A stretch of DNA of 64,000 nucleotides, taken from NCBI GenBank assembly GCA_965112735.1, contig OZ218950.1:4030001-4094000 (forward strand), written 5' to 3'. The DNA is from Phaeosaccion multiseriatum (Eukaryota > Protista > Ochrophyta, other classes). This document shows, piece after piece, positions 36,556 through 49,920 of this stretch. The position numbers and the translations under genes were made by a program. The stretch's first letter is position 1, and every line of letters begins with the position of its first letter. A model generated the notes under the pieces. The model was not told where the DNA came from. It made no database searches and saw only the letters and a program-made list of their open reading frames with translations.

Positions 36556-37368
36556 TCACATGTTTGAATGCACCTTTCGAAGCCTTGCCTGTAGCGCGCG
36601 AATGTTTGCCTTTGCCTAGGCACAAAGCGGGAGCGACAAAGGGCAGCGCAGACGGAACGAGCGAGCTAGCGAGTTTCAGCGAGCGAGCACAGCGATGATG
36701 ACAAGCCAATGGTGATGATGACAGGCAAAATACTGATGATGACAAGCCAATGGTGATGATGACAAGCCAATGGTGATCAAGCAATGGTGATAATGGCAAG
36801 ACGAGAAAGGCCAGGAGAGGAGGAGAGGATCACATGTCCCTCGCAGAGGATCTGTGTGCGTGTGTGTGTGCGTGTGTGTGCATGCATGAATGGGTGCGCA
36901 GGTGAGTGGGTGGGTGTACGTGTGTACCTTGGAGGAGACTTCCTTGCCGCCGTGCCCCGCAGCGCTCACAGGGGCGGCCGTGGTGGCCACGCGAAGGTTT
37001 GACTGAAACGATCCACGCCATTCATTGCCATCCATCGGCATCCACAGGGAGAGAGAGATGGATGAGAGCAGTAAGCAGGAGAGTCCAGCAGAGTCCAAGA
37101 GGGTGGGGAAGAAAGGGCAGGGGCGTTGTGAGGGGAGGAAACGGGGGCGAGTGGAGCGTCGCGGGGGCGGGGGGGGGGGTTAGCCGACAAGAGGGATGGA
37201 TGGCAGTGGGTGGAAGGGGGGGGAGGGAGTGAGGCAGGGAGGCGACATGCGACGTCAAAGTCTCGAGCCCTCTGAAGGGAAAAAAGTGTAAGGAGAAATG
37301 GCTTGGTTGAGGAACAACAGCAGCGGGTCAAGTCGTTGGCGTTCCTTCCCTCACACACACAGGTACAA

Positions 37369-37414
<46 letters not shown>

Positions 37415-39315
37415 GCGAGCGGGCGATGTCCCACGACTCCCTTCCCCACGGCGTGGAACAGTCCTTGGCCATGGCGTGGAACGTTACGCAGAAGGCGAGG
37501 TACCTTAAGAGAGAGAGTGGAGCATTGCATGGGATAGGGGAAGGGCAAGGGCAGGGACAGCACCGTCCAAGCACAACATGATATCAGTAATTGGCGAGGC
37601 GCTCAATCATAACAGCCGGCAAGTCCGGCCCGAGTTGGCGGAGGTTGCTGAGATGGCAGAGGATGGCAGCGTCAGGTGGCATTCAATGGCAGGGGATGGC
37701 AGAGTCATTCCTATACCGAGGCTGTCTGGCCTGACACGGGCTGAGGGGGTCGGAGGGCTCCCTTCACCCAAAGCGAGGCAGGAAGCAAAAGTGCAACAAA
37801 GAGGCTTTGCTAACGCTGACCCATGTGCCTCTCACCTGTCCAAGCTCGCCACTCGGGACTCATAGAACAGCTGCTGCGGGATGCTCTTGTCCTGGATCTA
37901 ATGGGGGAGAGGAGCGGCAGGAAGGAGCAGGGGGAGGCGGTGCGTTGGTCAGGCGCGCAGGCGCAGCACGGCACAGCACAGCAGAGGAGAGGAGAGCACT
38001 TGATGATACAGTACAGCACAGCACAGCTGGCACAAGGGTGATGACAGTCACCTCACTCCATGCGGGCAGACGGACTTGCCCCTCATCATCACCCCTCGCA
38101 AGCATTCAAACAAGTCAAGGAGTGTTGGTAGTACAATGCACTTCAAAAGAGCCCAACCCCAGCTGCTCCTACTCCACCCGACTCACTCACTCCGTCCGCC
38201 CTTCCGTAAGCGTACGTACCGTTTGCGTAAGCTCGTCAAGCTTGGAGGTGAAGGCGAGGCGCTTGGCAGGGTCATGGATGGCTCTCCACGCCGCCGCATC
38301 GTCTTCGTCGCCGCCGCCGCCGCTGCTGCTGCTGGTGCTGTTGCCTCTCTCACCGCTGCTGCTGCTTATGCCCAGCATGGCCCTCCAGCCATTAGCAGGA
38401 GGGGGGGGTGGCTGGCTCTGTGTCTGATGCTCCTCCTCAGCACCACCGGGAGCCGGGGACGGAGGGAGGGGAGGGGAGGGGGGCGAGGAAGACATGGGCG
38501 CAGGTCCTGTTGAGACTTGCGCTCGCTCCTGCTCGTTACCCCACATCCCCAGCCTGCCCAAAAGCCTCAGGTGCTGGAGTGCTCGCCTCACCCATCGGCC
38601 CAGCCATCGGCCAGCGGCTCCTCCGCACCAAGCGCTCCCGCGACGCTCGTCGTCATCCCAAGCTGTTGCGCAGAGGGGGGCGGAAGGGAAGAGACAAGGG
38701 AGACAGGAGAGGTGCAACACACACAGACACATGCACACACAGAGGAAGGAACAAAGAAAACTTTGAGTGACGTCCCCGTGGGGGTGGAGGACTGGGGGGT
38801 CATTCAGACCTAAGTCACGCACTCACATACTCACTCACTCGCTCACTCATCCACCCACCGACCCACCCACCCACCACACCTACTCCCTCCCTGTCTCTCA
38901 CTCCTTCCCTTTTCTTCTGTTCCTAACTCGGCATACACACACACTGTCTCTTTTCCTCCTCTATGCGTTTCCCTACATCGGCACACCCATTCCCTTCCTC
39001 CTCTATGCCTGTCCCTATGTCTGACACGCACACGTGCACATACATACACGCACACGCACACGCACGCACATACACGCACACGCACACACACACACACACA
39101 TACACGCACACGCACACGCACACACATGCACGCACTCAAACACACACACACACATACACGCACACGCACACACATGCACGCACTCACACACACACACATG
39201 CACGCACACGCACACGCACACCCATGCACGCACACACACACACACACATACACGCACACGCACACGCACACCCATGCACGCACACACACACACACACACA
39301 CATACACGCACACGC

Positions 39316-47575: not shown

Positions 47576-47634
<59 letters not shown>

Positions 47635-49920
47635 ACACACACACACACACACACACCGGCGTCTCCCGCACCCTGCTGGCCACGGCTGCCGCTTCACTGC
47701 CGAACAGCACCAGCGGTACGTCCTCCGTGAACGCCAGGGCCATGGGCTGCCCTTTGGACGCAATGACCACACTCGCAGGCTCCAAGCTACAAATGCCACT
47801 GATGCCGAACGACCCTTCCCCCCGGATGAGGAACTCGGACAGGGCGGTGAAGAGGTCCTGCCGCAAGAAGCTTCTCAGCGTGTGGAAGGCGAAGGACCGC
47901 AGCTCTGCCTCGCTCCATGCCATCCCCTGACCCCTGTCGCCGCTGCTCGGCACAGCCAAAGGAAGAAGGGGGGTGGGAAGGGGGGGGAGGGGACTCGCTT
48001 CGGCCCCACCAGTAGTAGTAGCAGCAGCAGCTGCTGCAGGTGTTGGTGATACCGCTGTGGAAGTGCCAGAGGCGGAGGCGTCCGCCGCTTTGAGGGCCTG
48101 CACCATGAGCGGATAGAGGCGCTTAACTGCTTCTTCGTCGATGGTGTAGGCCACTCCCTCTCCTCCTCCTCCTCCTCCTCCTCCTCCTCGTCCTCCCCCC
48201 CCCCCTCCCCCTCCTCCGTCCACCCCTAGCACTTGAATGACGTTATCAACCTCCCCCACCCACACCGCCTCGAAGCAGCGGCCCCACTCCTCACACCACT
48301 CCTGAGAGGGCGCATCGTCCTCCTTACTGCTGGCGACGGCCCTTTGGTACGCCAATCGCACACTCGCCGCCCAGCGGCCCTGCGTGGTCAGCAGGTCCAG
48401 CATGCCCGCAATCTTGGCACTGTCTCCTTTAACCTTGCTCCCCACGCCAAGCACTCGTGTCAGCCACGCCCCCACCTCATGGTTGGAGAGCTTCTGATTG
48501 AATAGGTCAAGGCTTTCAAAGTCTCCGTTGTGGGTAATCTGGATGCCCACTCGACAGTCGGGCACGGGCTGAAACGCTCCATTGAACATGCGCCACACCG
48601 TCTCGTGGTGGAAGGGTGTCCATTCGTGGGGGTGGAGTTCGGGCACCCGATTCACGCTGCTGGTGGCGAAGCGTGTGTGGCCAATGTAGGCACTGCTGCT
48701 GTTGCCGTCGTTGCACAGCAACCCACCCGGGGGGGCGCAGGAGCAGTTGTTGGTGGTGGTACAGCAGTTGGTGGTACGGCAGACGGACTTGAGTTGAGCC
48801 TTTCCGAGCTGAGAAACCCACTTCTCTGCCAAATCGTCTGCCAGGCTGTGGCGCTGTAGGACCGGGGGGAAAGAGGAGGGGCGGCGGCGCGGGGGGCATG
48901 GGATGATGGAGGAGTTAAGGTAGGAGGCACTGAACTTGGTTTTGACTTCCATGTATGAAGCAGAAGGACTTCCATAATGTAGGACAGGCCTCGAAAGGAG
49001 CCAAAGGAAGGCCGCTCGGGGGGGGTAGCGGAGGAGAGGAAACTCGTGTTGAGTCTAAGACACGTTTCCCTCCCTCCGTCCATCCATCCATCCATCCATC
49101 CATCCCTCCCTCCCTCCCGGCCCTCCCGGCGGCCCCCCACAAACTACGCTACCGGGGCGGGTGAGTTGTTACCTTCCTCGCACAGAGCCTCAGGCGCATG
49201 TGGAACGGCTCCACATCCGGGTTGATGGATGTGTACAGCTGAGCTTCAGCAGAGGGGGATGGAAACTGGCGAACACATAACACACACACACATATATATA
49301 TACGCAGAGAGAAGGGGAAGATGAAAGGGGGGAGAGAAGAACGTGAGAGACAGAGCGGGGCGAGCGGAATGGATACGGTATGTCCAAAAGAGCAGGTGCG
49401 CACTGCCATCGCTCTGCCTTTCGAGCCCTACCTGCTGCTGCTGCTGCTGGGTCTCAGGCGAGTAAAGGCTGGAGTCCTCCCTCCACTGCATAGTGGCCAG
49501 GCCCGCAGCCTGCCCACCCCTGATCTCCGTTGCCGCTGCCATTTGCTGCAGGATGTCGACGCAAGGGAAGAGAGAGTCATGCTCGGCCCCAACCTCGATG
49601 GAGGCGCAGGACGGCTTGCTCAGATCAAGCGGGTCGTCGCTGGTGACCGGGGCACGGCCGACGATGTCTTGCTGGAGAAGGAGGCGGAGCAGCCTGTGCG
49701 TGTGTGAGAGATGTAGAGAGCGGACGTGATGTGACGTGCGTGTCAGTGTCAGAGCCAGTGTCAGGGAAGAGTCCCAGGCGGGGTCAAGAAGGCATGAGGA
49801 GTGGAAGAGGAGTCTTGCTTGTGCCCATTCTGAGGCAGAGATGAGCTTGCTCGGGTCATTGGGAAAGGGCGTCGGGAGAAACATCCCAGCACTTCAAGCT
49901 CACCCAAAGTTTCCACACAT
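36556..49920 (-). CDS. GlmS-like protein: class II (Ntn) glutamine amidotransferase + SIS domain + two transmembrane segments + second SIS-like domain; about 20 exons
   Basis: Exon 1 (49920-49904) ATGTGTGGAAACTTTGG|GTGAG joins in phase to give MCGNFG|LLRLLL. Further motifs: [88 protein letters not shown], hydrophobic exon 43210-42788, [19 protein letters not shown]|YLAF and SQ|[13 protein letters not shown]. The last exon (36615-36556) is tentative. Confidence 0.85.
39875..40106. repeat. (CCCT)n intronic microsatellite
   Basis: Seen directly. Confidence 0.95.
42335..42762. repeat. Degenerate (CCCTA)n/(TAGGG)n pentanucleotide array at an intron 5' end
   Basis: Seen directly; G-rich on the transcribed (-) strand, next to the donor at ~42787. 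Confidence 0.9.
45243..45782. repeat. Intronic 30-bp tandem repeat (~6 copies, 45243-45420) followed by a (GAGACA)n array (45484-45782)
   Basis: 30-bp unit ACAGGCATCACAAGTATATGGGCAGGAA(G/T)T. Confidence 0.9.

Follow-up and report, generated by a model that had tools for sequence, protein, structure and literature searches.

A GlmS/GFAT-like, putatively membrane-anchored amidotransferase family with a divergent acceptor site, represented in the Phaeosaccion multiseriatum genome

The amidotransferase GlmS/GFAT has received much study and serves as a drug target; its residues Glu488, His504 and Lys603 act in the ketose-aldose isomerisation, with Glu488 as the base (PMC9272926). Here we analyzed a gene of the ochrophyte alga Phaeosaccion multiseriatum whose product is comparable to this enzyme. 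The gene is located in a stretch of 64,000 nucleotides (assembly GCA_965112735.1, contig OZ218950.1, positions 4,030,001 to 4,094,000 of the forward strand), which is called the window throughout and in which position 1 is the first letter. It lies on the minus strand, has at least 15 exons and runs from 49920 down to about 36950, as placed by homology and splice-site consensus. On balance, and with confidence a little above even, we favour that it encodes a class-II (N-terminal-nucleophile, Ntn) amidotransferase built on the GlmS/GFAT plan, which is anchored in a membrane by a helical hairpin, uses a different phosphorylated acceptor and is not a GFAT.

Domain order and active-site residues

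The family alignment contained 225 sequences, the window protein included, and the GlmS profile contained 11 sequences, namely E. coli GlmS and the products of ten glmS genes from bacterial and archaeal plasmids. The comparison of the two by hhalign gave a probability of 98.5% (E 1.5e-15) and aligned family positions 1-612 to GlmS 1-384, which spans the whole glutaminase domain and the first SIS subdomain (SIS1). With a single GlmS sequence the probability was 66%, and the value of 98.5% was reached with the deeper alignment and the 11-sequence profile. The curated models were far less responsive. Pfam gave only a sub-threshold SIS match in exon 7 among the exons of the window (PF01380, 14.2 bits against 25; E 0.04; exons are numbered as in the list below) and no match in 20 homologues except in P0174, where a Glucosamine_iso domain was recognised beyond the family module. 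The NCBIfam GlmS models (TIGR01135 and NF001484) missed their cut-off in five homologues, with 16-26 bits against 381-418; these matches were weak but colinear (E 2e-6 to 3e-3). The matches of phmmer and hmmsearch to PDB sequences were discarded, as those to low-complexity Gly runs were false and the family profiles gave non-significant fragments of GlmS or FrlB.

The fold was examined on AlphaFold models of P0166, a short cyanobacterial member. The full-length model (predicted local distance difference test, pLDDT, 74) was searched by Foldseek, which placed human GFAT-1 and E. coli GlmS on top (E 1e-15) and PurF next. The model of residues 430-1005, built with a 125-sequence alignment, had a pLDDT of 93.7 and a predicted template-modelling score (pTM) of 0.93. 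It superposed on the isomerase domains of GFAT/GlmS with Z 33-34 and a root-mean-square deviation of 2.6-2.8 Å over 355-363 aligned residues, and the target-normalised template-modelling score of Foldseek against isolated isomerase domains was 0.72-0.78. Residues 2-568 of this model correspond to E. coli GlmS 236-608, of which 608 is the last GlmS residue. As judged from the models, the SIS fold is present twice in the family and the order Ntn, SIS, inserted helices, SIS and C-terminal lid is real. A preliminary description of this DNA, made from the sequence alone, had read the order Ntn-SIS-insert-SIS from the spliced product; hhalign bears it out for Ntn and SIS1, as do the fold matches.

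Residue counts for the glutaminase and SIS1 phosphate sites were read in the hhalign register over the 225 members. The glutaminase positions are as follows (GlmS residue; family; window protein).

Cys1; 213/213 of the members covering the position; C2 (ATG TGT at 49920-49915)
Arg26; 223/225; R64
Arg73; 223/225; R154
Thr76; 225/225; T157
His86; 220/225; H167
His97; 220/225; H201
Asn98; 224/225; N202
Gly99; 225/225; G203
Asp123; 224/225; D237

The earlier claim of an intact glutaminase site thus stands, the site being near-invariant in the family and kept in the window protein. The features of a class-II amidotransferase were found, namely a Cys right after the initiator Met, the Ntn fold, the Asn-Gly oxyanion hole and the Arg/Asp ligands of glutamine; in GlmS, Arg73 and Asp123 are the residues that bind glutamine through its alpha-carboxylate and alpha-amino groups. 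The counterpart of Trp74 is Phe or Tyr in the family. The phosphate ligands of SIS1 are kept in a similar manner, with Ser303 in 215, Ser347 (as Ser or Thr) in 223, Gln348 (as Gln or His) in 220, Ser349 in 221 and Thr352 in 215 of the 225 members, and the window protein retains all those checked.

The acceptor side is different. The secondary-structure elements of the second SIS subdomain (SIS2) follow each other in the model in the same order as in GlmS, and the SIS2 register was inferred from this order together with the motif VSKLFSLSY, which was aligned with ALKLKEISY of GlmS. In this register the Lys485 position holds Lys in 219/225 (the Lys of SKLF), the Glu488 position holds Ser in 147, Ala in 74 and Gly in 3 members, and neither that position nor its neighbourhood has a conserved acidic residue. 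The replacement of Glu488 by Ser, as proposed before, agrees with the Ser of the window and with Ser or Ala family-wide, in a register that is inferred and not a superposition printed by a tool.

In the tail, model residue 557 is anchored to residue 598 in 7dnr and model residue 568 to residue 608 in 2j6h, with an ambiguity of one residue. The column of Lys and Arg at the Lys603 position has Lys in 75 and Arg in 40 close cyanobacterial sequences, Arg in 82 and Lys in 8 diverse representatives, and Arg in the window; the alternative neighbouring column has Thr/Leu or Ile/Val. Lys at the 603 position is therefore not conserved, and it is absent from the window gene in either register. The loss of this Lys from the window gene had been noticed in the preliminary description and holds, while the residue is Arg in the new register and not the Val that was read there. 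Its statement that the protein is not a normal GFAT is likewise upheld, by the curated GlmS models far under cut-off, by Ser/Ala at the Glu488 position and by the mostly Arg at the Lys603 position.

Judged by its conservation, the acceptor side is not decayed and has a strongly conserved set of residues of its own. In P0166 numbering and out of 225 members, these are Arg807 (224), Arg811 (219), Asp817 (201), Arg860 (191) and Arg863 (206), further the segment G870-x-P872-D873-G874-R875 and Glu884 (178), and the line Asp851-x3-His855-x3-His859 (202, 208 and 215), which falls on one helix face in the model.

Between the SIS subdomains lies an insert which is hydrophobic in 215/225 members and forms long helices in both AlphaFold models. 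In the window it is carried by exon 9, whose two hydrophobic segments have Kyte-Doolittle 19-residue means of 2.06 and 1.73. Both segments had been reported earlier; the start of the exon is moved from 43210 to 43237 by the best acceptor and homology. With two membrane-spanning helices, the SIS subdomains would not be separated by the membrane but would share one side of it. The window protein probably faces the cytosol on its membrane because there is no N-terminal extension ahead of the Cys.

Gene model in the window

The gene chain was built from three-frame translation, tblastn with homologues and a search of stop-free segments with the family hidden Markov model (HMM), and the splice junctions were picked as phase-compatible GT/GC-AG pairs scored by the same HMM. 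The window has a GC content of 55-64% and is rich in microsatellites. All exons are on the minus strand, as listed.

Exon 1, 49904..49920, minus: ATG TGT GGA AAC TTT GG and then the donor GTGAGC; start Met and Cys nucleophile (MCGNFG)
Exon 2, 49432..49693, minus: start of the Ntn domain, IRGGQAAG as counterpart of GlmS Arg26; tblastn P0010 and P0025; HMM 49563-49468
Exon 3, 47657..48853, minus: Ntn glutaminase core, GDSAK; HMM E 1e-103; tblastn; hhalign to GlmS 1-237
Exon 4, 46369..47261, minus: end of the Ntn domain, long low-complexity insert and linker; HMM 47141-47070 and 46556-46401
Exon 5, 46008..46137, minus: linker helix ahead of SIS1; tblastn P0235; HMM 46130-46017
Exon 6, 44710..44964, minus: start of SIS1; tblastn and HMM; acceptor ambiguous (44964/44967/44970) in an acidic repeat
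Exon 7, 44174..44496, minus: SIS1 with the phosphate loop SQSGQTFPT; HMM E 1e-37; hhalign to GlmS 347-352
Exon 8, 43530..43923, minus: helices after SIS1 and a Pro/Ala-rich insert; best-scoring junctions 44174>43923 and 43530>43237
Exon 9, 42788..43237, minus: two hydrophobic helices, then SIS2 strand 1; tblastn P0034 749-853; hydropathy
Exon 10, 41832..42065, minus: SIS2 core, SKLFSMSY (GlmS 484-491 region) and D-x3-H-x3-H; HMM E 3e-49; fold match
Exon 11, 41354..41449, minus: SIS2 strands; HMM and junction scoring
Exon 11b, 40811..40984, minus: start of the variable region, provisional 3' end; matches P0190 ERLHLAAKPFTAILLKSL
Exon 12, 37836..37897, minus: start of the last long helix; tail HMM E 0.004; canonical AG and GTGAGA sites
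Exon 13, 37413..37503, minus: tail HMM E 2e-11; tblastn P0190, P0198 and P0230
Exon 14, 36958..37002, minus: conserved C-terminal tail, counterpart of the GlmS C-terminal lid 598-608; tblastn and tail HMM

The exon blocks are each supported by tblastn matches of homologues and by family-HMM matches. Exons 1-11 joined give 1417 codons with no stop, and the last three exons are also in frame. The product of the exon 1-exon 2 junction resembles the MCGNFGLLLL starts of homologues, exon 3 also carries the helical insert of the family together with Gly/Ala-rich low-complexity stretches, and the hydrophobic helices of exon 9 are at model residues ~1177-1210 and ~1249-1275. The acceptor of exon 11b, CTTCTAAG|GTG, is in frame with the donor 41354. 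Exons 12 and 13 adjoin in tail-profile coordinates; another candidate for exon 12, at 37652-37596 with a GC donor, was displaced by 37897-37836 after a tail-specific HMM search.

The motifs quoted in the preliminary description were all recovered in their minus-strand frames (MCGNFG at 49920-49904 and the tail from 37002, among others), and its placement of IRGGQAAG (49693-49432), GDSAK (48853-47657), SQSGQT (44496-44174) and SKLFSMSY (42065-41832) was correct. The present model adds to its blocks the exons 46137-46008, 43923-43530, 41449-41354, 40984 onward and 37897-37836. Built on homology and splice consensus, the gene model is provisional at exon 4, which may contain one more intron, at the acceptor of exon 6, at ~40811-37897 and at the 3' end, where the frame of exon 14 is open as far as 36679 and the end at 36958 is provisional.

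The 3.7-kb gap between exons 11b and 12 contains a long tandem repeat at 39790-40150, which translates as (GGRE)n from the minus strand and as (PPSL)n from the plus strand. Tracts of (GT)n and (CA)n are found directly after several donors of the gene (47657, 44710, 41832 and 37413). A metatranscriptome contig with a joint 48714/49431 was set aside as a repeat artefact and not a splice, both flanks being CAG/AGC repeats (QQQQQQ and NSSS codons).

Distribution and origin of the family

A word-index search with the Ntn exon gave 49 proteins, among them cyanobacterial 'hypothetical proteins' and numerous truncated gene calls of eukaryote type starting MCGNFGL, and a second search of this kind gave 428 proteins, mostly cyanobacterial and of ~1200-1250 residues. 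In the cyanobacterial homologues the motifs follow each other as in the window protein, as far as ...SKLFSLSYGIASLEVHGANP... and the tail ...SQSRTKIMTTAAPVS. Cyanobacterial hypothetical proteins of the form MCGNFG...TTAAPVS had been mentioned in the preliminary description, and their existence is confirmed by the protein searches and the species-representative genomes. In an exhaustive profile search, 2388 cluster representatives (at 50% identity) were found at E<=1e-3 and 684 at E<=1e-30, and 30 cyanobacterial members have a mean column identity of 58%; by these figures the family has many members and is constrained.

Among relatives with a named source, two proteins of Chrysoparadoxa australica are nearest to the window protein, and a word-index search with one of them gave six matches only. 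Other named eukaryotic members are from Tribonema minus, Pelagophyceae sp. CCMP2097, the red alga Timspurckia, the cryptophyte Hemiselmis and a Polykrikos transcriptome. Among species-representative genomes the family occurs mainly in cyanobacteria, and also in Chromatiaceae (Thiocapsa and Thiocystis) and in Elusimicrobia metagenome-assembled genomes (MAGs). EF-hand domains are given by precomputed Pfam for P0274, P0353 and P0355 (Pelagophyceae sp. CCMP2097 and metagenome relatives), a hint that calcium may have a regulatory role in this lineage.

Most bacterial members carry a multi-pass membrane domain of ~190 residues immediately ahead of the Cys (residues 1-190 of P0162; also P0205, P0303, P0184 and others). 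Read from an alignment of 30 cyanobacterial proteins, its invariant motifs are H56-x3-H60...D68 and N167...S174..D177, and they are faintly reminiscent of site-2-protease motifs. An Ntn enzyme requires a free N-terminal Cys, and therefore this domain must be removed or the Cys works otherwise. Some cyanobacterial members and the window gene start with MCGNFG and do not have the domain, and the HMM of the domain gave no match in the noted members of the eukaryote clade and none in the window.

Bacterial giants of 2300-3300 residues carry the whole family module internally. P0174 (Elusimicrobia MAG, L006:6001-14658) and P0171 (L007:6001-13749) are single open reading frames (ORFs) of 2582-2885 residues with the module in the middle of the protein. 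Their ~1200 N-terminal residues gave no family match, and ESM Atlas look-ups on the extra regions of the giant from Elusimicrobia gave no match to its first 1230 residues. The C-terminal Glucosamine_iso/6-phosphogluconolactonase-type domain of P0174 (PF01182, E 8e-7), outside the module, hints at a sugar-phosphate context. Pfam searches of seven proteins encoded beside cyanobacterial copies gave no pathway clue.

Two kinds of interrupted bacterial copies were seen. On the metagenome contigs L003 (2830-2832) and L004 (2796-2798), the cyanobacterial gene is annotated as two ORFs, of 853 and 237 residues, which are separated by a single in-frame TGA at the position of a Trp that is invariant in other members (GDVPW|VHQLL); a nonsense mutation from TGG to TGA or read-through could account for it. 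The copy of Chroococcidiopsis cubana SAG 39.79 (L001:12540-13451) is interrupted between the SIS1 region and the remainder by an insertion sequence with a DDE_Tnp_1 transposase on the opposite strand.

The origin of the eukaryotic genes was analyzed by a FastTree tree of 142 rows and an IQ-TREE tree of 47 rows (LG+G4), in which few of the 'eukaryote' rows come from a named eukaryote, support for deep branches is weak and amino-acid composition is heterogeneous. The sequences of eukaryote type group together (support 95 and 100), as do the cyanobacteria (100), and in both trees the eukaryote group attaches among other bacterial sequences and not beside cyanobacteria. Constraining eukaryotes and cyanobacteria together changed the log-likelihood by -143 units, with p 0.00015 in the approximately unbiased test, which was chosen after the tree was seen. 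An endosymbiotic (cyanobacterial) origin, as suggested in the preliminary description, is disfavoured by the eukaryote clade standing apart from the cyanobacterial clade and by this test; a single acquisition by eukaryotes from bacteria, with an unclear donor, fits best with the sequences.

Function and comparison with known systems

In the favoured mechanism of a GlmS-plan amidotransferase with another acceptor, removal of the Met would expose the Cys nucleophile and glutamine would be hydrolysed, as the conserved site suggests. The ammonia would move to the SIS pair under the C-terminal lid in a GlmS-like manner, and the SIS pair would hold a phosphate-bearing acceptor. The acceptor chemistry would work without the Glu base or the Schiff-base Lys, with a conserved Lys, several Arg and the Asp/His/His line in their place, and this line could bind a metal or serve as acid-base groups. 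The hairpin would keep the enzyme at the membrane, suggesting a membrane-proximal acceptor or partner. Ser/Ala at position 488, mostly Arg at 603 and the family's own acceptor-side residues suggest that the acceptor chemistry is not Schiff-base or ketose-aldose isomerisation; without chemistry of the glucosamine-6-phosphate synthase type, the acceptor is probably not fructose-6-phosphate. A more specific version is tentative and we hold it with much less confidence: the family may perform an undescribed membrane amidotransfer, by which ammonia of glutamine passes to a phosphorylated sugar, a sugar acid or lactone, or a lipid head group, a remodelled and possibly metal-assisted site (Asp-x3-His-x3-His) replaces the Schiff-base isomerisation, and the product is a metabolite or lipid for which no gene is assigned in cyanobacteria and red-plastid algae.

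Several points weigh against the favoured reading. The assignments of Glu488 and His504 rest on secondary-structure order and not on residue-level superposition, and SIS2 and the tail gave no sequence-level GlmS signal in local and global hhalign or in profile searches of PDB sequences. Conserved His residues (H845, H852, H855 and H859 in P0166) lie within a few residues of the His504 position, and His504 may be retained. The membrane-spanning nature of the hairpin is a prediction from hydropathy. Four RNA runs searched against 44100-49950 matched only microsatellite and low-complexity stretches, giving no transcript support (ten RNA or presumed-RNA runs contain 5-6% of sampled words). No operon or neighbour gene is conserved across 80 bacterial loci, the recurring ones being common signalling genes and antisense ORFs. 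The records of the family are labelled 'hypothetical protein' or carry an automatic label only, and we found no paper on the family.

The best surviving alternative, although an unlikely one, is a sensor or regulator in which a phosphosugar would be the ligand of the SIS pair and glutamine the ligand or substrate of the Ntn domain, so that carbon/nitrogen status is read at the membrane with no aminated product. It would account for the loss of the isomerase Glu and Lys while both ligand-binding sites are kept, and the missing pathway neighbours at bacterial loci, the EF-hands of the pelagophyte homologues and the large extra regions of unassigned role in the bacterial giants suit it as well. 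A pure binder, however, would not need the invariant Cys and the Asn-Gly oxyanion hole seen over 225 members, the window protein has no recognisable output domain, and the strongly conserved polar residues of the acceptor side look catalytic. Both readings are putative, and a different acceptor is favoured over a carbon/nitrogen sensor.

A divergent true glucosamine-6-phosphate synthase, with relocated catalytic residues and placed at the membrane for glycan or wall synthesis, is improbable. The architecture, phosphate loop and C-terminal lid are as in GlmS, a Lys is at the Lys485 position, conserved His are near the His504 helix and a basic residue is at or beside the Lys603 position, all of which would agree with it; against this, the Glu488 region offers no conserved acidic residue, the Lys603 position is most often occupied by Arg, which is unable to form a Schiff base, and the curated GlmS models stay far under cut-off. 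The genomes of members are expected to carry an ordinary glmS too, which would weigh against such a role.

We regard as no more probable that the Ntn domain acts as an amidohydrolase on a gamma-glutamyl or other amide compound instead of free glutamine and that the SIS pair only positions or regulates it, since the counterparts of Arg73 and Asp123 are invariant, even if a helical insertion of ~100 residues in the Ntn domain, specific to the family, and the change of Trp74 to Phe or Tyr point in that direction. A decaying pseudogene or an artefactual exon chain is very unlikely: the lack of RNA support and the provisional structure of 40811-37897 and of the last-exon end speak for it, but fourteen homology-supported exons join in frame via GT-AG with no stop, and all family-invariant residues checked are intact in the window protein.

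The proteins make up a large sister family of GlmS/GFAT, with the same architecture, an intact glutaminase, a predicted membrane anchor and an apparently rebuilt acceptor site; Pfam has no model for this family. It ranges over many cyanobacteria, purple sulfur bacteria, giant fusions of Elusimicrobia and ochrophyte, red and cryptophyte algae. The acceptor, once identified, would probably add a new reaction to the nitrogen or sugar-phosphate metabolism of phototrophs, and would also show how the GlmS scaffold has been repurposed.

Among known systems, GlmS/GFAT (EC 2.6.1.16) is the best structural match for both halves of the family protein. It shares the Ntn glutaminase with N-terminal Cys, the two SIS subdomains, the C-terminal lid, the glutamine-site residues and the SQSG.T phosphate loop. 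The family differs from it by a hydrophobic hairpin of ~90-140 residues between the SIS subdomains, by ~100 residues of helices in the Ntn domain, by Ser/Ala at the Glu488 position and mostly Arg (Arg in the window) at the Lys603 position, and by its own Asp-x3-His-x3-His and Arg residues.

The PurF-type class-II enzymes (phosphoribosyl pyrophosphate amidotransferase, glutamate synthase and asparagine synthetase B) have in common with the family the Ntn fold, Cys1, the Asn-Gly oxyanion hole and glutamine binding by Arg and Asp, and PurF is the second group of structural matches to the family model. The acceptor domain of the family, in contrast, is a SIS pair and not a phosphoribosyltransferase, synthetase or flavin mononucleotide domain. 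B. subtilis PurF and glutamate synthase have propeptides, which the pre-Cys sequence of most bacterial members recalls, but in the family this sequence is a multi-pass membrane domain of ~190 residues. The SIS-only phosphosugar isomerases, deaminases and deglycases that resemble the GlmS isomerase domain (NagB-II/GlmD, AgaS and FrlB/FraB) share the double-SIS fold (Z 23-31 to PH0510, NagB-II, FrlB and FraB), and their phosphate loop gave the sole sequence-level PDB matches of the C-terminal family profile. These enzymes are soluble and without a glutaminase, whereas the SIS pair of the family is joined to a glutaminase domain that is intact, and the hydrophobic hairpin interrupts it.

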